A stretch of DNA of 64,000 bases from Blastocladiella emersonii ATCC 22665 (taxonomy: Eukaryota; Fungi; Blastocladiomycota), in the NCBI GenBank assembly GCA_025594325.1, contig JANHCV010000006.1, forward strand, positions 1,612,001 through 1,676,000, read 5' to 3'. The stretch's first letter is position 1; each line of letters starts with the position of its first letter. The notes under the pieces were generated by a model that searched no databases, was not told the DNA's origin, and worked only from the letters and a program-made list of their open reading frames with translations. The position numbers and the translations under genes are program-made. Shown piece after piece: positions 40,079 through 62,482 of this stretch.

Positions 40079-41119
40079 CTATTCGTCGTCCTCATCGCTG
40101 ATCAGGCCTGCAAACCCGCCGCCCGCGACCACCTCGGCGTCCGCGTTCGCAGCGCGGGCCTCCCGCTCGCGCTCGGCGAGGCGCGCGGCGCGCTGCTTGA
40201 GCCGCTGAAGGAGGGTCTTGGCCGGGGAGAAGATGCCCTGCGTCGGCTGCTTGCACGCGGCGCACTTGGGGCTGGTGCGGTGGTGGTCGATGGCGCACTT
40301 TTCGCAGAAGAAGTGGCCGCACTTGGTCTCGATTGGGTTGACAAAGTCCTTGCGGCAGATGAAGCACGCGAACGGCAGCTCGGCGTCCTTGTCGACCGCC
40401 TCCTCGACCACGGCCTCGCCGAGCGCCGCGTCCTCGGCCGCGGCCAGCGCCGCCTTCTCGGCGGCCTTGCGCGCGCGCTGGTTCGCGTCCCACTCCTTGT
40501 CGATCTCCCACCCGGCCTTGTAGTCGCCGCGGTCGTGCAGGAACTTGCAGCTATCCCCAAACCCGCAGAAGCCCGTCTGCTTGTAGTCCTTGCACACGTC
40601 CGGCTGGTAGTCGAACCGCGCTGTCACGCGGATGTGCGCCGACGCCTTCTGCGGGCCGATCCGGTTCTGCCGCTCCACGTACTTGCCGCTGCCCTGCTTC
40701 ACTTTCGACAGGTCGCCGTCCACGTCGATGGTGCGCGTCGCGTCCGCGTCGCGGTCCCGCTTCGCGTCTACACTCGGTGCGCGTGTGAGACTCGCACTGA
40801 TGATAGCTCCGGTATAGGGTAACGCACCCGACGAGGCGTACGTCACCTTGAGCGACTCGGCCTTCGCCGGCCGCTGCGCCTTGGACGACGCGACCAGCTT
40901 GGTCAGGTCCGCGAGCGACGGGTCCTCGTCCTTGCGCGCGCGCTTGGCCCCGCGCACAATCTCAGCGGAATCGTCGTCTCCATCATCGCTGTCATCGGTG
41001 CGGGGCCGCTTCGCCGTGGGCTTGTCAGCGGCCGACGCCGCGGATGGCCTTGGCGCGTCGTCGCCGCCGTCCTTTTTGCGGATGTTGCGTTTTGCGGCCG
41101 CTCCCGACCGTTTGAACAT
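40079..41119 (-). CDS. CWC24: Pre-mRNA splicing factor Cwc24 (RNF113; CCCH + RING)
   Basis: [35 protein letters not shown] and the [12 protein letters not shown]...[10 protein letters not shown]...CAAC. ATG at 41119. Confidence 0.93.
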
Positions 41120-41332
41120 GGTGGTTGATTGCGTTGCAGAGACTGTGGGATGCGTTGCGGGGAGCGGGGACCGCTCGCTGACCAATTTCGCGAGAAGAAG
41201 AAACGCAGGGTGGCCACGCGTCAGGTGCGGCGCGTGACCGAGAAAAACAAGTCCCCTGGCCTCCCGCGCCGCGGTGATCCGCCCAAGGCCGGCGCCACGC
41301 CGTACGCCGGCCCCCACACGCACCCCACCGCC

Positions 41333-43205
41333 ATGTTCTCCATCACCGACCTCCCCAAGGGTGCGCGACTCGCCGCAACGGCCTCGCGTGCCGCCGCCCG
41401 ACCCGCCGCCATGTGCTGATCTCCAGCTCCTTCCCGTAGGCACGGCCTTCGGCCCCGCCGCCTCCGAGGCGTGCTACCCGTACGACATGCCGTACCAGCC
41501 CTTCAACAAGCAGGAGAAGCTGGGCCGCGTCGCCGACTGGCTCGGCACCGAGGAGCTGTCGGGCCGCCCCGGCCACCAGCAGCAGCGCGGCGGGCCCCAG
41601 GGCCAGCAGCAGCGCGGCGGCGCCAAGGGCGGCCGCGGTGGCGATCGCCAGGGCGCCGAGGGCACCGCGTCCGCGTTCGGCTTCCAGCAGGAGTACGACG
41701 AGGCCTCCTTCTCCACCGTCAACTCGACCGGCCGCACCGCCGCCGCCATCGGCCCCACCCCGACCATCGTCCGCGGCGCGCCCACGGGCCGCGGCGGTGC
41801 TGGGTTCGGCGGCCGGGGCGGCAGTGCGCAGCGCGGCGGCCGCGGTGGCGCCAGCAACGTCGGCGGGCGTCCCGCGGGCGGCGAGCAGCGCCGTGGCCCC
41901 GGCGGCGCCCCCTCGCAGGGCGGGTACCAGGGCGGCGCGCGCCAGCAGGGCGGGCAGGGCGGGCGCGGCGGATACCGCGGCAACTTCCAGCAGCGCATTG
42001 TGCGCGACGCGTCGCTGGCGATCGGCGCCGACTGGTCGGTCGTCACCGAGTTTGAGCTGCCGCGCCTCGCCAAGACGCTGGCGGTGCCCGAGGTGCCCGA
42101 CAACGAGGTGCTCGACATGAACGGGTCCATTGCCACCTACACCAAGTCGTTTGACCGCGTCAACACCAAGAACCCCGTGCAGCTCGCCACCTCGGACCGG
42201 TCCAACCTCAAGTCGTCCAACGTGACCACGTCCGAGGACCCCGTCATCCTCGACCTGATCGCCGAGGGCCCCGCCAAGCCCACCGTGTACGCGACCGACG
42301 CCATCCTGTCGCAGATCATGGCCGCGCCGCGGTCCGTGTACTCGTGGGACCTGGTCATCACCCGCATCGGCGACAACGTGGTGCTGCTCGACCGCCGCGC
42401 CGGCGCCCTCGACCTGCTCTCGGTCAACGAGAACGCGCACGAGCCGCCCGCCGACCACCCGACCGACAAGGACTTTATCAACAACCCGGGCAACCTCGCC
42501 ATCGAGGCCACCTACATCAACGCCAACTTCTCGCAGCAGGTCGTCGACCACGCCAAGCGCGTCAACTTTGGCGCCGCCTCGCCGCTCGCCAATGGCGCCG
42601 ACGCCGACGCGGTCCCCTCGGCCGGGTACATGTACCGCAAGTGGTCGTTTGAGGACCGGTTTGACGTGGTGGCCCGTACCGAGATCGACGCGGTCGCCGA
42701 GGAGGCCGGCGGCAAGCAGGTGATGCTCACGGTGCGCGCCTTCAACCAGGTGCCCGGGCTCGCTGGGCAGACCATCGACTGGAAGAAGCAGTACGACTCG
42801 AAGCGTGGCGCGATCCAGGCCACCGAGATGCGCAACAACGGGTTCAAGGTCGCCCGGTGGACCATGCAGGCGCTGCTCGCCGAGGCCGACTGGATGAAGA
42901 TCGGCTACGTCGCCCGCGTCGCCGCACGCGACCCCGCCCACCACGTCGTCGTCGGATCCACCACGTTCCGCCCCGCCGACATGGCCGCCCAGATGAACAT
43001 CACCCTCGCCCAGGGGTGGGCCCTCGTCGGCGCAATCGCCGAGGCCGCCCTCGAGCAGGACCCCGGCAAGTACGTCCTCCTCAAGGACCCCAACAAGCCC
43101 AACCTCCGCATCTACGCCCTCCCTGATAACTTTGGCCCCGAGTTCATTGTCGGCCCCAACGACCCGTTCGCTGACGCCGTCGGCATGGATGACGAGGACA
43201 TGTAA
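41333..43205 (+). CDS. EIF3D: Translation initiation factor eIF3 subunit D
   Basis: ATG at 41333, intron near 41361-41419. Motifs are [48 protein letters not shown] and [12 protein letters not shown]. Confidence 0.93.
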
Positions 43206-45205: not shown

Positions 45206-45246
45206 AGTTCGCGATGCGCCACCCAGGTGGTCTCACATGAGTGGCG
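45206..45246 (+). promoter_or_regulatory. Array upstream element copy 1 (CGCCAC...GTGGCG inverted repeat)
   Basis: agttcgcgatgCGCCACccaggtggtctcacatgaGTGGCG, ending 72 nt before ATG 45319. Confidence 0.6.
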
Positions 45247-45318
45247 TCAGCCAAAGCGTCAGCAGAGCTGTCGCCAGAGGGCCTCCCGGGGAGCACGTCT
45301 CACTCAACGGAAGCAACC

Positions 45319-47666
45319 ATGCATGAAACCAATGAAGAAAACTTGATGCAATGGGCCCAGCAGCTCACCCTCGCTGGGATTCCCGCCGAGCTGTTGACCC
45401 AGGTGCTCCAGCTCGCCAAGCCCCAATCCGCAATCTGTGCGGCTGCGCGCGATCTTCGTGACGTGGCCCAAACTCCTCTCATCAAGCACGACTGGATACA
45501 GCGTACTATCGATCACGGTCTGCCTAATAAATGGCTGGGTGAGTACAGGGACAGCGACTCTATCCTCACGTCAGACAGTGGTGCGCTCCTTGAATACGGC
45601 TATCGAGGCGACAACCGTCGGGTCGCACCTGGCGATGCATCTTATGACTACGTCGTGTCGCTCTTTTTTGCCCTCCGCGACTATATCCTTCCGCTTGCGT
45701 CAAGCAATATACGCTTCTGCACGACCAGCGTGGAGTCGTTCCACGCGGGGCTCGACTCCTTGATTGGCGAGTTTTATCACCACCAGTGCAACGAGTCTCC
45801 CCTCGAGTGCCTCCTCCAGCTCCTTTGCCTTGCAACCATTCGACTCGACCCTCCGTCGTTGGCGCGCCTTCTCTCAACAACCGCGCAGGAGATCCCCAAC
45901 CTTTTCCGCATTCGACTTCGCAGCCGTTCGTGGGTTATCTTCGCAGAGCAGAGCCAGGAACTGCTTTTTGGACCTGTGCGCACCTGGATGGACACGACAG
46001 ACGGAACGCAGATCCGCCTCATGGACTATCTGGGCCTGCTTGCCGTGTTTCTTTGGGACCTGCCGACCCTACATGTATTGCGCAACGTACCGGGCGCGAG
46101 TATTGACCTACGTTGGCTCGTTGGCTCGTTAAACGACGACTTACTCTCTGTCCCGCTCCTTGAGAGCGTCGCCCTCGGCAACTTCAAACCACAGGACGTG
46201 GCGCTGCTTCTCCAGTGGCTCCTCAAGGAAGCTTGGACCGGCGAACGAGTACGCTTCGGCCCGAATCACCTTGTCTCCTATCTCTTTCGATCCCCTGCAG
46301 CGCTTCACACGCTTCATTTCCTGGAGGTGCTCGAGCCCCAGCGCGTGCGCATCTCCATTTCACCAATCGAGCGCGGTCTTCTTGTCGCGGGACTTGAATC
46401 ACGCACCACTACGGTCGACTTGGATTCTCTGGCGACGCTGCACAAGCTCAACCTGCTCAATGAGCTTGGCTGGGCGCACATCCTCAACTTTGCGATCCAC
46501 GAGGAGAATGGTGGGCTCTCCAGTCCTCTTGCGACTCTTGCTGCAGAGCAATTGGCGGATCGTTTTCAAAACGCACTTGTCAAAGGTACCGTCTGCTTTG
46601 CGGCGAAACTGGCTTTATGCAGGGCAGCTAACACAAACCCGAAACCAACTGTGCGTGTGTAGCCTTCCGGCTTTCGCTTCAGCTGCATCCCCATCAGCCC
46701 AAACCGCATCAATTTCTTGCCTTTGCTCGACTTCACCTTGCCGGGGACGCTCTCGAGCACGGCCTGATTCTTCAGCTCGCTACTGCCGTGCACGAGGTGG
46801 TCTTGGAGCGCGGTGCCGATCTTTGCGAGCACACTCCAGCTTGCCCTCATCCCAGCGCTTGCCGGATCTTGACCGCCGTGTTCGCGAGCAACCACAAGGC
46901 GGAAGTGTGGGATATTTTCAAACTCGCGAACGCGACGGTCCTCCTGCTCTCAACCTCAGCATGTGCGCCTCTGACTTCGGTCCCAGTCGCAGCGCTGCAG
47001 AGTCGTCTGTTGCGCGACAACGCGATTACACTGATCAGGGACCAGGACACTGCGCACTTGTTCCTTGGCGCGATGATCTGGGCGCAGACGAGAATGCGAA
47101 CCGGCCACCATGCTATCACTTGGACCTCGCCGTTCCGCAAACCTTGTGGCCATTGTCACCTGCTGCAGCAACGCGTGTGGCTTACAACAATCCGCGACCT
47201 GCTTGATGTTGGTCCAAACGTGTTGCGCCGGCTCCCCGTCGTTGCCGTCGCCGAATTGGACCGCTTCCTACGCTTGTTCGACGACCTCGAGTACAAAGTT
47301 CCGCTTCAACCGGACACGAACCTTGGCTACGTGGGCGCCTGCGACTCGGCATGCGACACCACCCTTCACCCGTTCCTTGAAATGTACCAGCATCTCATCC
47401 GCGCCGACCTCGCCAGTCTCCTGGACAAGCTTTGCGACGAGAACCGACCAGTCAAGCCGCTTCCCATTGCGTTCTGGAAGGCCGTACCTTCTGGCGCGCT
47501 TGACGGTGTCAAGGACGCCCACTGGATCGCGCAGATGGCGATTCGAGCGATCCGCAACCACGAGACAGCCGGCGGAGTTGCCAAAGAGCTTCGTCGTATT
47601 GCTCCAAAGACAGTTGCTTCCCACGAGTACGCCGAGGCCATGGTTGCGCTTGTCCACGAGAATTAG
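45319..47666 (+). CDS. Tandem-array paralog 1: F-box-like, Cys-rich unknown protein (~756 aa)
   Basis: Exon 45319-46585, intron 46586-46662 (GT..GCTAAC..TAG), exon 46663-47666; the frame checks. N-terminus is LTLAGIPAELLTQVLQL. Confidence 0.8.
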
Positions 47667-47957
47667 CCTTGATCGGGACGTGCGCCCTTGACCCGCGACC
47701 TTTGTTATTCAGTTATTCACACGCCTGTCCTCCTGTCGTTTTCCTGACGCAGTTCAATAACATCTCAGTTCCAACTCTTCGTTCTAGTGCTCATGAGGCC
47801 GCCCCCCAGCGCCTTTGCGCGCAGAACTTGCTAAACTCGTCTCCCCTCGTCAGGAACTCGCCCTACCGATGGCAAGTATTCGTTGAGCCGTGATTAGAGC
47901 CTCGGGGTTATAAAAACATTGTTCAGCAGTGCCCTGATGCCCGCAGGGTTGACTGGA

Positions 47958-48000
47958 GAGTCGCGTTGCGCCACACACCTGCCATCACATGAGTGTGGCG
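47958..48000 (+). promoter_or_regulatory. Array upstream element copy 2
   Basis: gagtcgcgttgCGCCACACacctgccatcacatgaGTGTGGCG (8-bp inverted repeat), ending 73 nt before ATG 48074. Confidence 0.6.
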
Positions 48001-48073
48001 CCGGGCATATTTGGGGCGGCCCGGTCAAGTGCGGACGGCGTTGCACACGACGACACTCTCGACAACAGCAACC

Positions 48074-50387
48074 ATGAACGAAACTAATGAAGAAAACTTG
48101 ATGCAACGGGCCCGGAAGATTACTCTCGCTGGGCTCCCCGTTGAGCTGCTGACCCAGGTGCTGCAGCTCGCCCTGCCGCAAACCGACATCTGCACCGCGG
48201 CTCGCGACCTTCACACCGTGGTCCAATGCGCTCCCGTAAAGCGCATTTGGCTCCGAAATCTACTTGATGATTGTGTGCCTGACGAGTGGCTGGACGGCTA
48301 CTGGCAGGGCGAAGACTGCTTCACGTCTGATAGCGGCGCGCTTCTTGAATACGGCCATCGAGGCGGAAACTATCGAGTCGCACCCGGCGATGAGTTCTAC
48401 GATGACGTCGCGTCGCTGTTCTTTGCCCTCCGCGACTACATCCTTCCGCTCGCTTCAAATGCCATGCGCTCCCGCGCAACTAGCATGGACTCCTTTTGTG
48501 CGGACCTCGGGTCCTCGATTGGCGAGTTTCATCACCACCAGTGCGACGAGTCTTCCATCGAGTGCCTCCTACAGCTCCTCACCCTAGCAACGATTCGACT
48601 TGACCCGTCGTCCGTGGCGCGCCTTTTCTCAACGACAGCGCGGGATCTCCCTGACCTTTTCCAGATCCGACTTCTGCCCCGCCATTGGGTTATTCTTTCA
48701 GTGCAGGGACACGAGCTGCTATTCCATCCTGCAGAGAGCTGGCTGGACGAGATGGACGGGACCCGCGTTCGCCTCTTGGACTATTTGGGCGTGCTTGCCG
48801 TCTTCCAGTGGAGCCTTCCGACCCTCATTGCCTTGCATGACCTGCCTCGTCGGGGTACAGCAAGCGCTGGCTCGCCAAAACTTTCAACGATGCCGACACG
48901 CTTTCGGTAGCGCTGCTGGAAAATCTCCCCGAAACTAGGTCCAACACGGTGGAGATGCTTCAATGGCTCCTCAACAAGTCGTGGACCAACGGCCGCGTGC
49001 ACTTTGGGAACAAGCACCTCGTGTCCTACCTTATTCACTCTCCCGCCGTCCTTCATCGACTTGAACAGCTCGAGCCGCAACGTGTATCCGCCTCCATTGG
49101 CGAACGCGAGCGCGAACATGCTTCTCAGTACCTGGTGTCGTCCAAAGTTCCTTTGGATGCCTGGGAGACTTTCGACAAGCTTAACCTTCTCACCGAAGGG
49201 AAATGGGCACACGTTCTCACGTTTGCGCTTTACGAAGAAAACGGTGAGGCTTCCGGTCCGCTCGCAACGCTTGCTGCGCGGCTTCTGGGCGATCGACTGC
49301 AGAGCGTCATTGAACCGGGTACGCTTGCCCAGCCAAATTGTCGTCACGCGCCATGCCTCTAACGCGAAGTCTGCTGTTCCTAGCCTATCGCGTTTGCCTT
49401 CAACAGCAAATTGAAGAGCCGCGAGAGTGTATTGAACCGGACCAATTCCTTGTCTTCATTCGCCAGCATCGCTCCAACGACGCTCACGACCTTATTACCA
49501 AGCTTGCCTCAGTTTTGTCCGAGGAAATCCGCCTCTCCGACGCGGCGGAATGCGTGCACCTAGTGACTTGCCCGCGTCCCGGCGCTTGCCGAATTGTGAC
49601 GGCCGTCTTTCCCAGCGACCACAAAGCGGACTTGTGGGATGTGTGGCTTCTCGCGAACGCCGCCGTCGTCCGGCTCTCAACCGCGGCCTGTTTAACTCTT
49701 GCGTGGGTTCCTGTTGCCGTCTTGCAGAACGAATCGTTGCGAGACGAGGCGGTCGCGCTCATGAAGGAGCGCAACACGGCGCCCAAGTTTCTTGGCGCCA
49801 TGATCTGGGCTCACACCGTCGCCAAATCAGGCGAACATATCATTGCACATTCCTCCGGCTTCACCTGCAGCAATTGCCCGCTCATGCTTCAGGGCGTCTG
49901 GCTCGAGACCATGCGTGATCTTTTGGCGGTCGATTCCAATGTCTTGCGCCGGCTTCCGATTCCTGCCTTCGAGGCTCTCGCCCAGCTTCTCCATCAGTTC
50001 GACAACATTTCCAATGTCATCCCGTTGCGGCCGGGTACAAATGAATCGTACAGGGCGAGCTGTGACTCGGCGTGCGATGTGATTGTTCGCCCGTACCTTG
50101 AAATGCTTTGGCTTCTCATCAAGACTGACCTCGGCGCTCTTGTAAACCTGTTTTCCGTGGCGCTTGGGGAATCGCACCATATTCCCCTTTCCTTTTGGAA
50201 GGCCGTACCTTCAGGTGCGCTGGACGGCGTCATGGGCGCTGGGTGGATCGCAAAGCTCGCCCTCGAAGCGATTTGGAGCGGTTTCAAGTCCCGCGAGATC
50301 AACAAGGAGCTTCGCCGCATCGCTCCGAAAACGGTCGGATCAGACGAGTACGGCAAGCTCATGGCCGCGCTTGTTCATGGCGAATGA
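48074..50387 (+). pseudogene. Tandem-array paralog 2, frameshifted (1-nt deletion near 48857-48862)
   Basis: Homology switches frame: DLPRRG | KRWLAKTFND..LLENLP. Intron is 49319-49383. The spliced length of 2249 nt is one short of a multiple of 3. Confidence 0.7.
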
Positions 50388-50641
50388 ACAAGATCGCGAT
50401 GCGCACCCTTTTGTTTCACGATTGAATTTTGAACTTGTTTTCTCTGGTTCCAATCTGTATTGAATCTCTGCCCAGCTCATGGGACCTCGTCAGGTAGAAG
50501 TAGCAGGTTGACGAGCTAAGTCTCGCCAAACATCGGGACTGCAGGACACTGTGCGCTTATGGATCGTGTTGAGGATCTTTGAGGCTACATGGAACAGCTG
50601 CCTAACTCTACCATGGACTCTGCCCATTGAAGTCGACTCGG

Positions 50642-50684
50642 GAGTCGCGTTGCGCCACACACCTGCCATCGCGTGAGTGTGGCG
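50642..50684 (+). promoter_or_regulatory. Array upstream element copy 3
   Basis: gagtcgcgttgCGCCACACacctgccatcgcgtgaGTGTGGCG, ending 72 nt before ATG 50757. Confidence 0.6.
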
Positions 50685-50756
50685 TCGGAGCTTCCCACCT
50701 TGTTTCAGCTCCAGATCGGAGGGTCGCGAGCGTCAATCCCATCGACAGCACCAACA

Positions 50757-53062
50757 ATGAATGAAGCGAATGAAGATAACTCGATGCAATGGGCTCAGCG
50801 GCTCACCCTGACTGGGCTACCTGTCGAGCTCCTGGCCCAAGTGTTGCAGTTCGCCCGACCTCAATCCGCGATTTGCGCGGCTGTGCGCGATCTCCGTGAC
50901 GTGGCTCGATCTCCTCTTGTCAAGCACCTCTGGATCCAATTCCGACTTGAACGCGACCCACCCGAAGACTGGTTTAACGACTACATGGAATGCGACGACT
51001 TTTTGTCGTTGGAAAGTGGCGCGTTGCTTGAATATGCAGGTGCCATCAACCGAGTCTTTCCTGGAGACGCGTCGTTCGACTACGTTGTCTCCCTCTTCTT
51101 CGCTCTCCGCGACTACCTTCACCCGCTCGCATCAAACGCCATGCGCTCCTGTAATACACCCGCCATGGTGCTCAAATCTTCGATTGACGAGTTTCTCGGC
51201 GCCAGGCACGACTGTAAACAGTTTCCAGTCGAAGGTCTTGCGCAGCTTCTTGCACTTGCTGTTGTCTTCTTGGACTCCCCGTCACTTTCGCGCCTTCTCT
51301 CAGTAGCAGCGCACGAACTGCCCGAGATATTTGGAATCCAGCTCCCCTGTCGTTCATGGGTCGTACTTTCGGAACAGATATGGAAACTATTCGAGTACGC
51401 GGGCGATTGGGCCGACGAACTGGACAGCACGCACCTGCGGCTCATCGAGTTTATGGGCATTATCGCCGTTTTCGTGCGGAATTTGGACAATCTCTTTGCC
51501 CTGCGCGATGCGCCATTGGTGGGACTCGACACGCGTTGGATCGCCACAGCCTTTCGCAGCAATGCACTCTCCGCGACGTGGCTGTTGAATCTTCCTTCAA
51601 TCGGCATGACTTCCAAGGTGATCCGGGATATTACATCCATGCTCCAGTGGCTGATGCGGGAAGCTTGGGCTGACAAGCGCAACTTCATTAACGACGGTCA
51701 TCTCTGCAGGTATCTTACTCACAGCACGCCGGTTCTTCATGAACTGGAACAGCTCGAGTCTCAGCGGTTGTCCATTTCAATTGGCGAGTACGAGCGCGAG
51801 TACGTCGCAAGCGAGCTTCAGATTGAAAATGTCGAAGAGAAAAAAACAGTTACCGTCAACTTCAACACTGTGACAGCCTTTCACAAGCTCCACCTCCTCA
51901 ACGAGCTTGCTTGGTCCCGCGTTCTTGTTTATGCGCTTTGCGATCGGAACGGTGGACCGGCTGGCCCGCTCGCGTCGCTCTCTGCGCAGCTGATGGGAGA
52001 TTGTCTTCAGTCTGCCGTCGTTCAAGGTGTGTATGACGCGGCGGAGCACGCTGCAATGTGTTAGCGATCACGGTAACCAATCTCTTTTCGCGTTTAGCCT
52101 TTCGAACTTGCCTCAAGCTGTCCCCACGTCATCCGGACCCATGCCAAGTTCTTGCCTTTGTTCAACAGCACCGCCCAGACGACGCCCTAGGCCTGATGCC
52201 CCTGCTTGCAGCGGGATTGCGTGCCGCGATTCGCCTTTCGGAATCGACAGAGTGCTTCGACCTCAAGAAACCCTCCCCAATTTTGCTGGCTGTGTTTGAA
52301 AGCAGTCACATCTCTGTCCTGTGGGACCTGTTTCTGCTCGCGAACTTTGCCGTGCTTGAGCTTACGCTCTCAGAGTGCGCTGAGGTCGTTTGGGTCCCTG
52401 TTGCTGCGTTCCAAAACGATCTGCTTCGCGAAAAGTCCATCGCACTTATGGTGCAGCATGGAACCGCACACATCTTTCTTGGCGCAATGATCTGGGCGCA
52501 AACCGCCGGGCGAGTCGGTCGCCATACCTTCCCACTAGCTGCGCCCATGACGCAGTCGTGCGGGGATTGCGACTTGTCGCGCCAGCGCGTGTGGCTCGAG
52601 ACTTTCTGTACCATTGCCGCTGCCGACCAACGCGCCATGTATCAAATTCCGCATGGTGCCGTCCACAGCCTCGTCGACGCGCTATCCTTTCTCGAGACCC
52701 CAAGTGAGTCTGGTTCCGAATCCAACCCGAGCGCCTGCAGCTCTGCATGCGACACGCTACGGAACCCGCTCCACGACTTACTCCAGCTGTTCATGGGCGA
52801 CGTTGTGGGCACCTTTAAGCTTTTCGGGGACATCATCAATTTGGAAGCGATCCTTCCCCTCGCGTTTTGGCAAGCCGTTCTGACTGGCGCGCTTGATGGT
52901 ATCAAGGACGCCCAGTGGGTCGCAAGTGCCGTCGTCACGGCCCGATGCGATCCTTGCACGTCTCGTCAAGTCGTCGCGGAGATTCGTCGCGCGGCCACTG
53001 AGACCGTCAAGACGCGCGAATACGCCGACGCCATCTTTGCCGCCATCAACTTCGAGTCGTAA
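50757..53062 (+). CDS. Tandem-array paralog 3 (~744 aa)
   Basis: Exon 50757-52026, intron 52027-52097, exon 52098-53062; the frame checks. It shares the same motifs (SGALLEY, LFFALRDY, FLGAMIWAQT, GALDGIKDA.W). Confidence 0.8.
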
Positions 53063-53367
53063 GCGGACGACGTTGTTTTTGTTCTTGTGATATACTTTTT
53101 CAGTTTGAAACATGTTGCGCGTATCTCATGACGGGTAAAAACCTCGTTTTTGTCTCTGAATTAAATGCGCTCAAACATTAGCGCCGCCCTCTACACTCTC
53201 GCGCGCCCGTCTAGTGCTGTTGCAGGACGACGATGGGGAAAGGGCAAATCCGTCACACATTTGGTCGGGACTTGGATCGCGACCGTACCACTGCGAAAGT
53301 TCATGACCTCTTCTTGAAGAAGTGGGCTTTAACGGACACGCTCCGCTCTCGGCCCCTGCGGAGGCGA

Positions 53368-53408
53368 GAGTTCGCGCTGCGCCACGCATGGGTCTCACAT
53401 GTGTGGCG
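53368..53408 (+). promoter_or_regulatory. Array upstream element copy 4
   Basis: gagttcgcgctgCGCCACGCATGggtctcaCATGTGTGGCG (11-bp stem with one G-T pair), ending 68 nt before ATG 53477. Confidence 0.6.
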
Positions 53409-53476
53409 CTCGGCAGGTTCGTCAAGCGTTTGGGAGCCCGGTGCCCCGGCATGTTCCTCCTGCGATGGATGCAACC

Positions 53477-55830
53477 ATGAACGAAACCAATGAAAATGAC
53501 TTGATGCAATGGGCTCGGGAGCTCACCCTAACTGGAATTCCTATCGAGCTGCTGACCCAGGTGCTGCAGCTTGCCCATCCCCAAACCAAGATCTGCTCGG
53601 CGTCGCGCGACCTCTACGTCGTGGCCCAGTCCACTCTCGTCAAGCACACTTGGGTCCAGTACATTCTCGCCCGCAGCCCGCCGGACGGATGGGTGACACG
53701 GTACACGGACGATGCCAGGTTCTTTACTTCGAATAGCAGCGCGCTGCTCGAGTACGGGCACAGGGGCGATACCTGCCGGTTTGAACCCGGTCACCCTTCG
53801 TCCGACTGCGACATTTCGCTCTTCCTTGCCCTTCATGATTACATTCTCCCGATGGCATTGGTCGCCATGCGCACTTGCTCCACTGGGACCACCACGCTCT
53901 ACGAAACGCTCAAGTCAACCATCGGCCAGTTCCGGCGCTGTCATCGCGCTTGCAAGACATCGCCCATCGAAACCTTGCTCCAGCTCCTGATTCTCGCAGC
54001 AATTCGACTCGACGCACCGTCCGTGACGCGCCTTTTTGCGACCACGGCGCGAGACTTGCCTCAAATCCTCCGCACCCGACTCCCGTTCCGCACGTGGATC
54101 AGCCTTACCGAACAAGGAACCGATTTGCTTCTCAAGCCCGCGCGCAAGTGGTTGGACGACATGACTGAGTCCCGTCCGCGACTCCTCGACTTTTTGGGCA
54201 TCCTTGCCGTCTTCTTGTGGAGCTCGCCGACCCTGCTTGCCCTTCGCGACTTGCCAACGCTGGGACTCGACGCGCGCTGGCTCGCGGACACCTTTGACAA
54301 TGACTTGCTCTCGACTATTCTCCTGGAGAGCGTTCCCACGGCCAAGGTCAGTAACAAAAAGGTCGAGGATATTGCTCTGACGCTCCAGTGGCTGTTCAAC
54401 AACGCTTGGACTGACGGGTCCATCGTCTTCAACCGCTACCATCTTGTCGACTACCTCTTCCGATGCCCTGGACTTCTTCCGCTGCTTGACAACCTCGAGT
54501 CGAAGCGCATTTCGGCCAACATCTTCTCTTACGAATGCAGGCGTCTCACAACCCAGCTCGAAAAGGGACGCGTCTGCCTAGACACGGACGCGGTGGCCAC
54601 TTTCCACAAACTTAAACTTCTTGACCTGTTCGGTTGGGTGCAGGTTGTCTTGTGTGCGCTTGATGAGCGAAACGGTGGACCGTCCAGCCCGCTCGCGACG
54701 CTCTCTGCGCAGCTGCTCGGCGACCGCTTTCAGGACGTTGTGGTTGAAGGTACGCAATTCTCAGATTTAGCGCACGACCATGGCGGGTTGCTGATTCACA
54801 TTCGGAGCGATACTGTCTAGCTTTTGAACGTTGTGTCGAGCCAGATGAGGATTTGCCTTCGACGGCTGTCATCCTTGCCTTCATTCGCATGCAACGCCCA
54901 GATGAGGTCAATGATCTCATGCCCAAGCTTTCCTTGTCGCGTTTCAACATGGTCGGCGAGGATGAAGACGACATTTGCACCCATCACTCCAATTGCCCAT
55001 ACCCTCGCGCTTGCTTGACCTTGACGGACGTGTTTTCTCACGCCAGCAGCAATCTCAATTGGCTGTGGGACACGTTCCTCCTCGCCAATGCAACGGTTGC
55101 CCAGCTGTCTGAAGTGGCATGCGGGCCGCTCGCTTGGGTTCCTGTGGCCGTGCTGCAATGTTGTTCGCTGCGCGACAACGCGATTGCGAAGATCAAGGAC
55201 CACGAAACTGCGTATTTGTTCCTCGGAGCGATGATTTGGGCGCAATCCACTGACCGGACCGGCCGCCACTACATTGCCAAGGCCGCCCCGTCCAGTTTCA
55301 CCTGTGACACTTGTCCGCTGATGCGGCAGCGCGTGTGGTACACAACGATCCGCGAGATCCTCGAGCTTGGTCCAAACGTTCTGCGCCAGCTGCCCGTTCG
55401 TGCCCTCCGAGCTCTTGTCAAGGTGCTTTTCGACTACGACAACGACCTTGCTTACGTAGTTTCGCTTGGTCCAGATTCAGACCAGACACCGGAACCGTGT
55501 CTCTCGTCATGCGATGCCGTTTACCATCCATACGTCGAGCTGCTCCAAACTCTCATCCACGCCGACTTTGCCGCCCTGCTGGATCTGTTTCGCGACGAGA
55601 TTGGTCCAAAGTCCTCGCTCCCCGTTTCCTTTTGGAGGGCGGTGCCCGACGGCGCGCTTGACAGCGTCAAGGACGCCTCCTGGATCGCGCAAGTGGCCAT
55701 CCGCGCGATTCGGGACCGCGCGGCGCCCAGTAAGGTGGCCCACGAGCTCGCTCGTATCGCGCCCAAGACGGTCGCTTCGGACGAGTACGCCAGGGCCATG
55801 GTTGCGGCGGTCCACAACAAATCGGTTTGA
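53477..55830 (+). CDS. Tandem-array paralog 4 (~760 aa)
   Basis: Exon 53477-54749, intron 54750-54820, exon 54821-55830; the frame checks. Confidence 0.8.
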
Positions 55831-55976
55831 TTGAGACGCGGTTGCTTGGTGGAATCGTTTCTGTGATTTCAGTTATATCTTCCTCAATTTTCTCTTGCAC
55901 GCGTATGCAACATACCTTTGTTTTATCCTACATTATTGATGAAATACTGATAGAGAAAATTGCATATGCAGCTCAA

Positions 55977-56012
55977 GTCGCGTTGCGCCACTTGCGTGGC
56001 ACACATGCGGGC
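55977..56012 (+). promoter_or_regulatory. Orphan, partly degenerate fifth copy of the array element (no paralog follows)
   Basis: gtcgcgttgcgccac is identical to copies 2 and 3 and is followed by cacatg. No MNETNE-type ORF lies downstream. Confidence 0.5.
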
Positions 56013-56537: not shown

Positions 56538-57076
56538 ATGGGCAAGGGACCGCGGCGAGCGGCTAGGCGTCATCAAGCAAGCATGTGCAGCACCAAATTC
56601 ACCAACGAGGGCTGCCGCAAGGCGTTCTGGGCCGACCTCGCCCGCGCGCTGCGCGGCCACGTCGTTCTCATGGCCGCAACTTCTCGGGCTTCGGCATGAT
56701 CTCCGCGGCCGACAAGGGCCCCGTGGTCGAGATGGTCAAGGAGCTGCGCTCGCGCGGCGTCACCGTGTACGCCGTTGACGAGAACTTCTTGAGCAAGTGG
56801 TGCGCCGCGTGCGCCATGGCCGACCCCGCCGCCGCCAAGGCCAACAAGACCAACCTGCTTGGCAAGAAGGACAAGAAGGTGTACCAGACGCGCGCGTGCC
56901 GTCGCTGCGGCGTCCGCGTGCAGCGCGACCGCAACGCGGCCGTCAACATCTCGTTCGCCATCAAGCAGCTCGTCTTCGAGGACCAGGCCAAGGACGCGGA
57001 CGGCAACCCGCCGCCCGCCGCCCGCCCCAAGCACCGCTACCACCGCAAGTGCCGCACCACGCCCACGGTCGAGTAG
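56538..57076 (+). mobile_element. TnpB/Fanzor-family RuvC-zinc-finger remnant (5'-truncated, frameshifted)
   Basis: The C-terminal frame reads VYAVDENFLSKWCAAC...CRRCGVRVQRDRNAAVNI (RuvC-II E, CxxC...CxxC, RuvC-III D). An upstream frame from ATG 56538 (..CRKAFWADLARALRGHVVL) joins to HGRNFSGFG by a -1 shift near 56669. No RuvC-I Asp segment is seen. Confidence 0.8.
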
Positions 57077-57938: not shown

Positions 57939-58012
57939 GTCGCCGTGGTGTAGTCGGTTATCACGCCTCCCTTACAAGGAGTAGGTCCCCAGTTCGAACC
58001 TGGGCGGCGACA
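57939..58012 (+). tRNA. tRNA-Val (anticodon TAC)
   Basis: Acceptor stem GTCGCCG/CGGCGAC, D-loop TAGTCGGTTA, anticodon arm CTCC-CTTACAA-GGAG, T arm CCCAG-TTCGAAC-CTGGG, discriminator A. Confidence 0.9.
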
Positions 58013-58256: not shown

Positions 58257-61200
58257 CTACTTCCCAACCTGCTTAACCACGGCGTCGCACCGGCCACACA
58301 GCGCGCCCTCGCTCGGCGCCCAGAAGTTCCAGCACCGCGGGCACTTGTGCTTCTTGGCGTTCCGCGCAACGACGGTAACACTCGCCTTAGCACCTCCCGC
58401 ACTCGCCGCGGGGTCCCAGTTGCCGTCGCCGGGCGCGAGCGTGACCGCGTACTCTTCTTCCCCACCAACCTCGTTCGCGTCCGCGACCTCGACGCCGCTG
58501 ACGACCGTGAGCTGCTGGACCGCGCGCTTGTACGTGTCGAGGAACGCGGCGGTGGCCGCGTGGGGCGCGGCGAGGACGAGCTCGGCCTCGAGCGACGACC
58601 GGATCCGCTTGTCGCGGCGCAGGCGCTCGAGGACCTGGTTGGCGGCGTCGCGCAGGCCGAGGAGCGGCGCGAGGTCGGCGGCGAGGGAGGGGGCGCGCCA
58701 TTCGGCGGGTGCGGCGCGCCACGTGCGGCCCATGAAGTAGCCCGGGTGCGCGGAGCCGAGGACGGGCGACGCGTGCGTGTACACTTCTTCGGCGAGGAGG
58801 GGCAGGATCGGGGCGAACGACTGCACGTAGAACTCGAGAATCTACGAGTTGCACGCGCGCGAGTAGGTCAGCGACGGGTTCTGGGGCAGCTCGCGCGAAA
58901 CCGCCGTACCTGAGCGAGCGTGTACTGCGCGGCGCGGCGGCTGGGCGAGTCGGCGGCCTCAGCGTAGAGGCGGTCCTTGAGCGACTCAAAGTACATGGCG
59001 GAGAGGGTGTTGTTGGTGAAGACGTTGAGCGTCTGGACCACGCGGTAGTACTGGTGCGCGTTGTACGCCGCGTGCACCGTGTCGGCCATGGCGGCGAGCT
59101 CGTGGAGCACGTAGCGGTCGAGGTCCTCGAGGTCCGCGTAGGCCACCACCGTGTCCCGCGAAAACCCGTCGAGGTTGCCGAGGAGGTACCGGCACGTGTT
59201 GCGGATCTTGCGCAGGCTCTCGGCGGTCGCCTGGAGCACCTTGGACCCGAGACTAATGTCGCGCGTGTACTCTGCGCCGCCGACCCACAGCCGCAGCCCG
59301 TCGACGCCGACGGGCGGCATCGCCTTCTTGTCGGCGCCGCCGTGGATGATGGTCGCGGGGCCAACCGTGTTGCCGATCGACTTGGACATTTTCTGCTTGT
59401 GCTCGTCGACGAGGAACCCGTGCGTGATAATCTTCTTGTACGGCGCGACGCCGCGCGTCGCGATACTCGTCAGCAGCGAGCTCTGGAACCACCCGCGGTG
59501 CTGGTCGCTGCCCTCGAGGTACACGTCGGCGACCGTGTTCTCGCCGAGCAGCGTCCACGAGGTCCCCGAGTCGAACCACACGTCCATGGTATCGGTGCCG
59601 CGCCGCCACTGCGTGGGATCGAGCCCGCTGCCGGGCGGGAGGAACGCAGCGACGGGGAGCGTCCACCACGCGTCGGCGCCGCCGTTCGCCTCGATGACGG
59701 CCGCGATATGCGCGACGCTTTCGGGCGTCATGAGGTGGTCGCCCGTCTCGACGTGGTACAGGACGGGGAGCGGGACGCCCCACGACCGCTGGCGCGAGAT
59801 GCACCACTCGGACCGGCCGGCGACGTAGCTGCGGAGGCGCGAGCGGCCGGTATCGGGGACCGTGGTGACGGCGTCGCGCAGCGCGGCGAGCGCGGTATCG
59901 CGGACCGCGTCGATCCGCGCAAACCACTGCGGCGTGGCCCGCTGGATCACGGGCTTCTTGGCGCGCCAGTCGTACGGGTACTTGTGCACAAAGGAGTGCG
60001 CGTGCGCGAGCGCGGACGTCGACTGCAGGTACTCGATGACGCGGTGGGTGCCGTCGGTCAGGACGGGCGCGCCGACGAGGAACGCGGGGGCGTCGGCCGT
60101 GTACTTGCCGTAGTCGTCGACGGGCGACGCGATCTCGAGCCCGTGCTTCATGCCCGTGAGGTAGTCGTCCATGCCGTGGCCCGGCGCCGTGTGCACGAGC
60201 CCCGTCCCGCTGTCGGCCGTCACGTAGTCGGCGGCGACCACGGGGCAGGCGGCGCCAGTGAACGGGTGCGCGTAGGTCCACGACAGCAGGTCGCTGCCGG
60301 TGAAGCGGGCGACGATGGCGGCGTCGCGCGCGGCGGGGTCGACGGGCAAAAAGTCGAGCGCGGCGAGGCGATCGGCGCCCACGAGCCAGTGCTCGGTCGG
60401 GGAGACGCGGACGAGGACGTAGCTGAGGTCGCGGTGCACGGCGACGGCGCGGTTGGCGGGCAGCGTCCAGGGCGTGGTGGTCCAGATGAGGATGTTGGTG
60501 CCCTCGGGCACGCTGGCGTCGCCGGTAGCAGTCACGGCAAACTTGACGTAAACGGACTTGGACGTGTGCTCGTGGTACTCGAGCTCGGCCTCGGCGAGGG
60601 CGGTCTGGGTGGCGGGCGAGAAGTAGACGGGCTTGCGCTGGCGGTAGATGAGGCCGCGCTCGACCATCTTCTGGAACACGCGCAGCTGGCGCGCGACGTA
60701 GGCGGGCTCGAGCGTCTTGTAGGCCTTGGCCCAGTCGCCCATGATGGCAAACGACTGGAAGTCGGCGCGCTGCTTCTCGACCGTGGCGAGGGCGAGCTCG
60801 CGCGCCTTTTGCCGGATCGCGACGGGCGTGAGGGGCGGCTCCGCAGCGGCGTCCGCCGTGGACTTTTTCGCCTTCTTGGCCGCCTTGGCCGACTCCTGGA
60901 GCGCCTTGAGCTCAATGGGCAGGCCGTGGCAGTCCCAGCCGGGCACGTAGTGGACGCGCTTGCCCTGGAGCAGTTGCCAGCGCAGGACCATGTCCTTGAG
61001 GACCTTGTTGAGGGCGTGGCCGGCGTGCAGGTCGCCGTTGGCGTAGGGCGGACCGTCGTGCAGGATGAACTGCTCGGGCCGCAAAGCGGGCGACTCGGCG
61101 GCCTGCCACGCGTACAGCTCGTCGGTCGTGCGCTTCAGCAGCACCGGCCGCTGCGCTGCGTCGGGCCGCATCGCAAAGGACGTCTTGGGCAGACGCAGCG

Positions 61201-61399
61201 TGTCGGCGTACTCGCTCTTGGGCTTGGCCTCCTTGGCCTTGCCGGCCGCGGGAGCGGGCGCAGCGGCGGTGGAAGCGGCGGCAGCGAGGATCGGCGACGA
61301 CGTGTGCAGCAGTTTCATGGTCGCCGAGACGACGGCGGCCGGGCGCGCGAGGCGTGCCGCGGCATTTGCAGCAAGGCCTGCGCGGCAGAGGCGTAGCAT
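58257..61399 (-). CDS. ISM1: Isoleucyl-tRNA synthetase, mitochondrial (bacterial type)
   Basis: Arg/Ala-rich presequence MLRLCRAGLAANAAARLARP. Motifs are LHDGPPYANGDLHAGH, GWDCHGLPIE, EGSDQHRGWFQSS and KMSKS, with a C-terminal CPRCW...CGRC zinc finger. Intron near 58.83-58.91 kb. Confidence 0.95.
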
Positions 61400-61460
61400 G
61401 GCAGCGGAATTCGTGGTGGGCGAGGGGAGAGCGCGAGCGGGGCCGGCTGCCGAGCTGTTT

Positions 61461-61494
61461 GGGCTCGGCCCAGGGCTCGGCCAGGGCTCGGCCC
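61461..61494. repeat. Three tandem GGGCTCGGCC(C)A units in the IleRS/DsbA-like divergent promoter
   Basis: gggctcggccca gggctcggcca gggctcggccc. Confidence 0.7.
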
Positions 61495-61661
61495 GCGGCC
61501 CATGTGACCGGCTGCAGCCGACCGCCGATGAGCGACGCGGCGCCCGCGTTGATTCTTCGCAACTGATCGCCCTGATCGCGTCAGCGGCCCTTGCGCCGGA
61601 GCCTACAAATGGCGCGGGCAGGGTTGCCGCCAGTCCGCGCTCCCTTATCCGCCCGCCCGCC

Positions 61662-62482
61662 ATGAAGCACTTGCTCGCCACCGTCGTTGCCGCCCTCTTC
61701 TGCCTCGCGGCGCTCACCTCGGCCGCTCCCGCTCGCACGCAGCACCCGTCGTTTGCGCTCGACGAGACGCGGCACTGGTCCACCTCGACCGTCATCAAGT
61801 CTGCCGCGATCCCGCCGCCAGCCAAGATCGAGGGCTTCGTGCTCAACCGCAAGGGCGAGGTGCCCGCGGACGGCGGGGTGCAGGTGACGGCGTTCCTCGA
61901 CCCGCTGTGCCCCGACTCGGCCGCCGTCTGGCCCGCGCTGGGCGATGCATCGGCCGAGCTCGCCGATCGCGCCGTGTTCCGCGCGGTCCTGTTCCCGCTC
62001 CCGTACGCTCACCGGGATAGCGGACTGACGTTGAGACTGACCCTCCCTCACAACCGTTCAGGTACCACCGCAACGCCTTTATCCTGAGCCAGGCCGCGCA
62101 CGCGTGGCACGCTGCTCTCTCCAACGACGTCGACGACTCGCCCGTGAAGCCGCTGCTCGACCTCTACTTCTCCTCGATCGACGAGCTCGGCAGCCGCACC
62201 GACGCCGTCAGCGAGCTCGAGTACCGCGCGCGCCTGGTTGGGATCCTGCGCGAGCGGCTCCCCGCGCTCGCCGACCGCATCCCGGTCGACCAGTTCAAGG
62301 CCGCGCTCGCGCCGCAGTCGCCCGCCGACACGGCGGCGCGCCGCCACTTCAAGCACGCGGCGTACCACGGCGTCACGGGCACGCCGCAGGTCCTCGTCAA
62401 CGGCGTGCTCGACCCGCGCGCCGACGAGATCGAGTCGGTGAGCGCGTGGCGCGCGTACCTCGACGGGCTCGGCGGTCGGTAG
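61662..62482 (+). CDS. Secreted DsbA/thioredoxin-fold protein (CPDS motif)
   Basis: Signal peptide MKHLLATVVAALFCLAALTSA. Motifs are FLDPLCPDS, spliced LFPLP/YHRNAF (intron near 62003-62060) and GVTGTPQVLVNG. Confidence 0.75.

Follow-up and report, generated by a model that had tools for sequence, protein, structure and literature searches.

The 64,000-nucleotide stretch of Blastocladiella emersonii ATCC 22665 contig JANHCV010000006.1 analyzed here (hereafter, the window) contains a tandem array of four related genes between 45.2 and 55.8 kb. Repeat analysis identified the array as four head-to-tail direct-repeat units with start-to-start distances of 2683–2755 nt. A first-pass annotation, made from the sequence alone, had described four head-to-tail units of about 2.7 kb, each consisting of one gene with a homologous phase-1 intron, and our gene models agree with this description (units of 2.68–2.76 kb). 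Within each unit, two long plus-strand open reading frames (ORFs) are joined by a short intron, which is predicted from the sequence to have GT-AG ends in the context G/GT...AG/C, to be in phase 1, and to occupy one shared position in the alignment (Table 1). After splicing, copies 1, 3, and 4 each yield a coding sequence (CDS) with one terminal stop codon and a length divisible by three (2271 nt/756 aa, 2235 nt/744 aa, and 2283 nt/760 aa, respectively). Copy 2 is one base short compared with the other three copies, and there is no further lesion downstream in the shifted frame; the frameshift may be either very recent or an assembly error. The earlier statement that the copies are diverged yet keep their ORFs is thus correct for copies 1, 3, and 4 and incorrect for copy 2. 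Conservation sets in at the assigned start codon of the array genes, and the copies share a CAACCATGA context there; both observations support the assignment.

The coding blocks of the four units share 60–82% DNA identity. Tandem Repeats Finder did not detect the array because its period is too long and its units are too diverged. We found no further family fragments elsewhere in the window and no coding homology after position 55840; a fifth gene unit beyond 55830 was considered and rejected, as there is no family coding homology there.

Table 1. Positions of the array genes and their upstream elements within the window
Feature	Position	Strand	Remarks
Copy 1, exon 1	45319..46585	+	Residues 1-422 plus first base of codon 423; F-box-like motif at 45367-45495; remainder predicted by AlphaFold as ankyrin-like helical solenoid
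Copy 1, intron	46586..46662	+	77 nt, GT-AG, phase 1; inter-unit DNA identity ~0.35
Copy 1, exon 2 and stop	46663..47666	+	Predicted ARM/HEAT-like solenoid; CxxC..QRVW at 47145-47183; CxxxC at 47340-47354
Copy 2, exon 1	48074..49318	+	1-nt deletion after 48846 and premature stop at 48908-48910 (alignment of exon 1 DNA from all four copies, ORF list)
Copy 2, intron	49319..49383	+	65 nt, GT-AG
Copy 2, exon 2	49384..50387	+	Open in its own frame
Copy 3, exon 1	50757..52026	+	Gene model
Copy 3, intron	52027..52097	+	71 nt, GT-AG
Copy 3, exon 2	52098..53062	+	Most diverged copy; 744 aa in total
Copy 4, exon 1	53477..54749	+	Gene model
Copy 4, intron	54750..54820	+	71 nt, GT-AG
Copy 4, exon 2	54821..55830	+	760 aa in total
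Unit 1, upstream inverted repeat (GCGCCAC...GTGGCG)	45216..45246	+	Ends 72 nt before ATG (upstream alignment, pattern scan)
Unit 2, upstream inverted repeat	47968..48000	+	Perfect 9-bp arms
Unit 3, upstream inverted repeat	50652..50684	+	Upstream alignment, pattern scan
Unit 4, upstream inverted repeat	53379..53408	+	Upstream alignment, pattern scan
Orphan left arm of upstream element (GTCGCGTTGCGCCAC)	55977..55991	+	No family coding sequence after it

The array genes are old, and they are under selection. The four copies have pairwise amino-acid identities of 43–54%, and 205 residues are invariant in all four. Pairwise synonymous divergence (dS) is 1.15–1.63, which is saturated, and the ratio of nonsynonymous to synonymous divergence (dN/dS) is 0.30–0.37, both over the whole length and within each exon. 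When whole units are aligned, DNA identity is ~0.3 in the spacers (the level expected at random), ~0.35 in the intron, and 0.5–0.8 in coding sequence, with a peak of 0.79 in the first 100 nt of the CDS. Because conserved frames have stayed open while spacers and introns became saturated, and because dN/dS is ~0.3, we conclude that these genes are old duplicates under purifying selection; the intron behaves as non-coding DNA. The family had initially been proposed to be fast-evolving; judged at the resolution of pairwise dN/dS, that proposal is not supported. Within the first 60 codons (45319–45498 in copy 1 and the homologous segments), dS is 0.5–0.7 in five of six pairs, compared with 1.0–1.7 in the rest of the gene, which suggests gene conversion or nucleotide-level constraint. 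The four window copies group as one clade (support 96/98) in a tree of the C-terminal half, a topology consistent with tandem duplication in situ.

The array has a GC content of 0.55–0.58, compared with ~0.70 in its surroundings, and the GC content at third codon positions (GC3) is 0.64–0.71 in the array genes, compared with 0.92 in the flanking genes for eIF3d and a class I aminoacyl-tRNA synthetase. These values match the original description of a lower-GC stretch with codon usage less GC-biased than that of flanking housekeeping genes. The introns and spacers of the array and the adjacent non-coding DNA have a GC content of 0.51–0.57. Since the array is close to this local non-coding background and its GC3 is low, the apparent island consists of genes with weak codon bias and shows no evident sign of foreign origin.

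Family members elsewhere in B. emersonii

A profile built from exon 1 of all four copies was used in an exhaustive search of 1.84 billion representative proteins (E ≤ 0.001); this search identified 18 matches, 17 of which are annotated as “hypothetical protein H9P43_...” of B. emersonii ATCC 22665 and are encoded on six contigs of assembly GCA_025594325.1. The remaining match, a bacterial cadherin-repeat protein, is spurious, as it was aligned via 16 short stretches. The matches included no protein of any other member of the Blastocladiomycota and no viral protein, and pattern scans of IMG/VR and the JGI metagenomes did not find relatives of the family. The proposal that this is a lineage-specific family is therefore strengthened, with relatives detected only in B. 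emersonii ATCC 22665 and arrays present at further loci. The window copies aligned to the 17 relatives with no more than ~40% identity (25–40%), and no Pfam domains were found in these relatives. In a word-indexed homology search, the exon 1 ORF of copy 1 retrieved nothing, and the C-terminal half of one annotated relative (P0006) retrieved only itself. Based on this lack of close matches, the four window genes are apparently missing from the public protein set. The genome paper reports 10,031 annotated genes and does not mention the family (PMC9730499), and a literature search for Blastocladiella together with F-box returned nothing relevant.

Seven loci with annotated paralogs (L001–L007, 22–25 kb each) were translated in six frames and scanned with profiles of both halves of the protein. 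All seven carry family copies or fragments, which are arranged in head-to-tail arrays at six of them. Together, these loci add ~25 further copies or fragments, many of them split by frameshifts, truncated, or without a gene call. For example, two full-length copies between 13.3 and 18.4 kb of L002 are uncalled; uncalled full-length or fragmentary copies occur at L002:12323-18667, L003:4800-9700, L004:12600-21000, L006:1-9800, and L007:14500-19700. In two annotated proteins, P0001 (1425 aa) and P0007 (745 aa), a pair of adjacent copies has been fused into a single model. A 98.9% “hit” between the profiles of the N-terminal and C-terminal halves (hhalign) proved to be an artefact, as the row P0007:405-745 is the N-terminal part of the second fused copy.

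Across loci, the six-frame scan always placed the two halves ~65–85 nt apart; given this constant gap, the intron is older than the expansion of the family. The other arrays (e.g., those with KAI9173056.1, KAI9173088.1, and KAI9173268.1) resemble the window array in their two-part architecture, the intron at the same place, the LP.ELL motif, the CxxC...CxxxC tetrad, the head-to-tail layout, and the presence of broken copies. Their identity to the window copies, which form a clade of their own, is only 25–40%.

An inverted repeat, GCGCCAC[AC]...GTGGCG, precedes the gene in each unit of the window array, with 8–17 nt between the arms as matched, and ends 68–73 nt before the ATG. No other part of the spacers is conserved; the repeat could be a promoter element or a hairpin in the 5' untranslated region. 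The same pattern was not found upstream of the paralogs in L001–L003.

Predicted structure and the N-terminal segment

The proteins encoded in the window are ~84 kDa, acidic (isoelectric point 5.1–6.2), and leucine-rich, with no signal peptide and no clear transmembrane segment. The N-terminal motif, helical blocks, and cysteine motifs listed in the first-pass annotation are all present in the alignment of the spliced proteins. The two exons were modelled separately with AlphaFold2, using family alignments that comprised 23 and 13 rows. The model of exon 1 is all-helical, with 28 helices, a mean predicted local distance difference test score (pLDDT) of 78.9, and a predicted template-modelling score (pTM) of 0.78; the exon 2 model is also all-helical (pLDDT 75.9, pTM 0.80). 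In an exhaustive VIA search with the exon 1 model, the best Z score was 7.0, and the top rows were mostly ankyrin-repeat domains (KANK3, IkB-zeta, FEM1B, ASB11, and Notch) at root-mean-square deviations of 5–8 Å. Structural searches with the exon 2 model returned ARM/HEAT proteins (TELO2, beta-catenin, and importins; best Z 6.6). The shape search of the ESM Atlas gave template-modelling (TM) scores of 0.41 for exon 1 and 0.44–0.52 for exon 2 (BEM4, the UNC45 central domain, and adaptin), and the feature and shape searches of this atlas yielded generic solenoids only, or nothing for exon 2.

Foldseek did not match either exon model to a PDB structure at E ≤ 0.001, and searches of PDB sequences with family profiles (A1, A2, and A5) returned nothing or chance matches. 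Ankyrin profiles gave no match at E ≤ 10 in nine segments of 100–120 aa or at E ≤ 1 in whole exons, no ARM/HEAT profile matched whole exons, and no Pfam family was above threshold in the window proteins. The earlier reading had recognized no known domain beyond the N-terminus, and with no above-threshold Pfam match, PDB sequence match, or significant fold match, this remains so. Based on the models, we describe the protein body as a predicted alpha-solenoid with an ankyrin-like N-terminal half and an ARM/HEAT-like C-terminal half, to which no family is assigned.

The proteins contain 14–21 cysteines per ~750 aa, so the initial label “Cys-rich” was overstated. A CxxC motif (residues 584 and 587 in copy 1, followed by Q..W) and a CxxxC motif (residues 649 and 653) are kept in most of the ~30 copies, and the C...CP.P.AC cluster is confined to copies 1, 2, and 4 of the window, in line with the three copies noted earlier. 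In one subfamily (the L004 copies and L001:2060-3100 on the minus strand), the substitutions C>T, Q>H, and C>P occurred together, which looks like remodelling of a metal site; another subfamily has C...H in the alignment. A structural Cys4 metal site, with zinc as the candidate metal, is plausible based on the conserved CxxC...CxxxC tetrad, and to that extent the earlier suggestion of possible zinc binding stands.

Within the N-terminal half, conservation across the family is highest in a segment with the consensus L..LP.ELL..VLQLA.P..V..A.REL......VK..W across 35 N-termini from the window and the seven loci. An LPxE[IL]L start and regularly spaced hydrophobic residues over ~45 residues are present across these 35 diverged copies. 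The first-pass annotation had called this N-terminus F-box-like, and three weak lines of evidence point in the same direction. Among Pfam families below threshold, PF12937 was the commonest, with matches in 8 of the 35 N-termini (best E 0.0056), and there was one additional match to F-box_4. When residues 1–75 were used in a language-model search of the ESM Atlas, the ten best named neighbours were all F-box clusters (top scores of 0.90, 0.88, and 0.88). A search of a viral structure library (BFVD) gave weak matches headed by F-box and ankyrin proteins of Pandoravirus (E ≥ 0.009, TM ≤ 0.27). In the exon 1 model, the N-terminus has helices at residues 23–32, 44–50, and 53–66, predicted with low confidence (pLDDT 50–66 for residues 1–100).

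Our preferred reading, to which we assign a probability of a little under one-half (about 0.45), is that the array comprises four locally duplicated members of a Blastocladiella-restricted multigene family encoding F-box-like modular solenoid adaptors. Under this reading, each gene would encode a soluble, acidic, all-alpha solenoid protein of ~84 kDa, ankyrin-like over its N-terminal two-thirds and ARM/HEAT-like over its C-terminal third, with the Cys4 metal site probably bracing the latter. The most conserved N-terminal segment (L..LP.ELL..VLQLA.P..[VI]C.A.R[ED]L...VK..W) would act as a divergent F-box-like docking motif, for which the most likely partner would be Skp1 in the Skp1-cullin-F-box (SCF) ubiquitin ligase, and the more variable solenoid would bind targets specific to each family member. 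The family would grow and shrink through tandem duplication and pseudogenization.

Several observations weigh against this reading. No family member reached the Pfam threshold for any F-box family of clan CL0271 (PF00646, PF12937, and PF15966); the best F-box score, which came from a different copy than the best E value, was 15.3 bits (E 0.017), compared with a cut-off of 24.3 bits. The F-box match spans only positions 2–26 of the 47 profile positions, corresponding to the first helix, and family profiles built from 18 (A4) and 35 (A7) sequences did not match any solved F-box chain in the PDB at E ≤ 10. The F-box neighbours from the language-model search share few features with the query. In the exon 1 model, pLDDT is <50 at residues 36–42, where the second F-box helix should begin. 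All of the fold matches for the solenoid body (Z ≤ 7, TM ≤ 0.52) fall inside the range of unrelated helical repeats, and the weak codon bias suggests low expression of the array genes. Based on these sequence comparisons, membership in the F-box family is not established, and we see about an even chance that the N-terminus is a true, divergent F-box. The F-box identity in the original description is therefore only hinted at, by the recurring sub-threshold PF12937 matches and the language-model neighbours, with no profile threshold reached and no solved F-box matched.

An alternative that we regard as almost as probable is that this is a true orphan family with no link to SCF. In that case, LP.ELL would belong to a family-specific helix, serving, for example, as a cap at the N-terminal end of the solenoid, in dimerization, or in docking of a partner, and would only resemble an F-box's first helix, and the proteins would be scaffolds or binders in a Blastocladiella-specific process. 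Besides the confinement of every sub-threshold F-box signal to the first helix and the lack of a solved F-box match, this alternative is favoured by the position of the tryptophan that is invariant in canonical F-boxes, which in our direct reading of the sequences is L or F in this family, and by the restriction of relatives to a single species. However, the same Pfam clan recurs in paralogs that have diverged to 25–30% identity, and the F-box also surfaces in the independent language-model search. In addition, in our own reading of the sequences, LP, the R-[ED]-[LF] segment, and the hydrophobic positions are spaced as in an F-box.

Two kinds of known systems offer comparisons for the F-box-like adaptor reading. 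Lineage-specific F-box superfamilies include FBA/FBK in Arabidopsis and F-box A/FTH in C. elegans. The window family resembles these plant and nematode superfamilies in its short conserved N-terminal box with a variable body, its tandem arrays, its birth-and-death pattern, and its single-lineage range. It differs from them in that its box is below every F-box profile threshold, its body is a predicted all-alpha solenoid without a Pfam family, and its pairwise dN/dS of ~0.3 gives no sign of diversifying selection. Adaptors that combine an F-box with ankyrin or ARM repeats also exist; examples are Legionella AnkB, Pandoravirus F-box/ankyrin proteins, poxvirus Ank/PRANC proteins, and plant ARABIDILLO. 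The window family is similar to these adaptors in having an F-box(-like) element together with a helical repeat solenoid, and ankyrin proteins top its structural list while Pandoravirus proteins top its viral list. In contrast to this overall likeness, there is no sequence homology to these adaptors, no ankyrin or ARM profile match, and the structural scores are in the range of noise (Z ≤ 7, E ≥ 0.009, TM ≤ 0.27).

Genomic neighbourhood and implications

The flanking housekeeping genes (41274–43205, plus strand; 40079–41443, minus strand; and 58868–61852, minus strand) have GC3 values of 0.83–0.92 and encode eIF3 subunit d, a CCCH/RING (RNF113/Cwc24-like) protein, and a class I aminoacyl-tRNA synthetase; a tRNA-Val gene is located at 57939–58012. 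A C-terminal remnant of a TnpB/Fanzor gene (56585–57073; Cas12f1-like TNB, E 1.3e-08) lies ~750 nt downstream of the array. Only its C-terminal TNB/RuvC-III part was matched, including an RDRNAAVNI motif, and its GC3 is 0.90. A link between this remnant and the array was considered and rejected, as the remnant was not found in L001–L003 and its GC3 is unlike that of the array; we treat it as an incidental neighbour. At another locus (L001:5617-9948, contig JANHCV010000009.1), family copy P0006, which is truncated at its 5' end, directly adjoins a block of genes on the minus strand, among them one for a Pox_A32-type packaging ATPase (E 1.6e-11). This block may be an insertion derived from a Polinton/Maverick element or a virus.

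These neighbours, together with the Pandoravirus proteins at the head of the viral fold matches, could indicate that the family is cargo, or a descendant, of mobile elements or giant viruses and that the low-GC island is inserted foreign DNA. We consider this highly unlikely. The GC content of the array equals the regional non-coding background, and weak codon bias accounts for the island; spliceosomal introns are conserved family-wide; and repeat analysis found no inverted terminal repeats. The TnpB remnant differs from the array as described above, and the viral fold matches are weak. Moreover, Pfam, IMG/VR, and metagenome searches revealed no homology to a characterized mobile-element or viral protein, and the exhaustive protein search included no viral protein among its matches. 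Least probable of all is that the array is decaying or non-functional DNA, with frames open by chance or through recent duplication, as the frameshift in copy 2, the many fragmented paralogs elsewhere, the lack of gene calls, and the weak codon bias might suggest, given that three frames of ~2.25 kb remain open although synonymous sites, introns, and spacers are saturated, that splice sites and 205 residues are conserved, and that dN/dS is ~0.3.

A more far-reaching version of the F-box-like adaptor reading is that dozens of tandem F-box-like solenoid receptors in this early-diverging fungus make up a diversified repertoire for intracellular recognition, through which targets would be passed to SCF, for instance in defence against viruses or mobile elements, such as those that left the Polinton-like and Fanzor remnants beside two arrays, and that the substrate-binding fold of these receptors is new and is accompanied by a Cys4 metal site. 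We regard this version as unlikely, and the results lend no support to the role in non-self recognition suggested in the first-pass annotation.

B. emersonii serves as a model organism in studies of early fungal evolution and in optogenetics. Approximately 30 copies or fragments of the family occur in the ~220 kb that we examined, and many of them are uncalled; the published annotation thus seems to lack many members of a family that may rank among the largest lineage-specific ones of this organism. Of the hypotheses available for this undescribed, species-restricted family, a role as F-box-like adaptors is the best, albeit an unproven one. If the N-terminus docks Skp1, the family would amount to a large F-box expansion whose solenoid body has not been seen before, and it would offer a tractable example, outside plants and animals, of ubiquitin-ligase adaptors that evolve by birth and death. 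Without Skp1 docking, it would be an orphan family of considerable size, of defined fold class and with a probable metal site, that deserves annotation in its own right.

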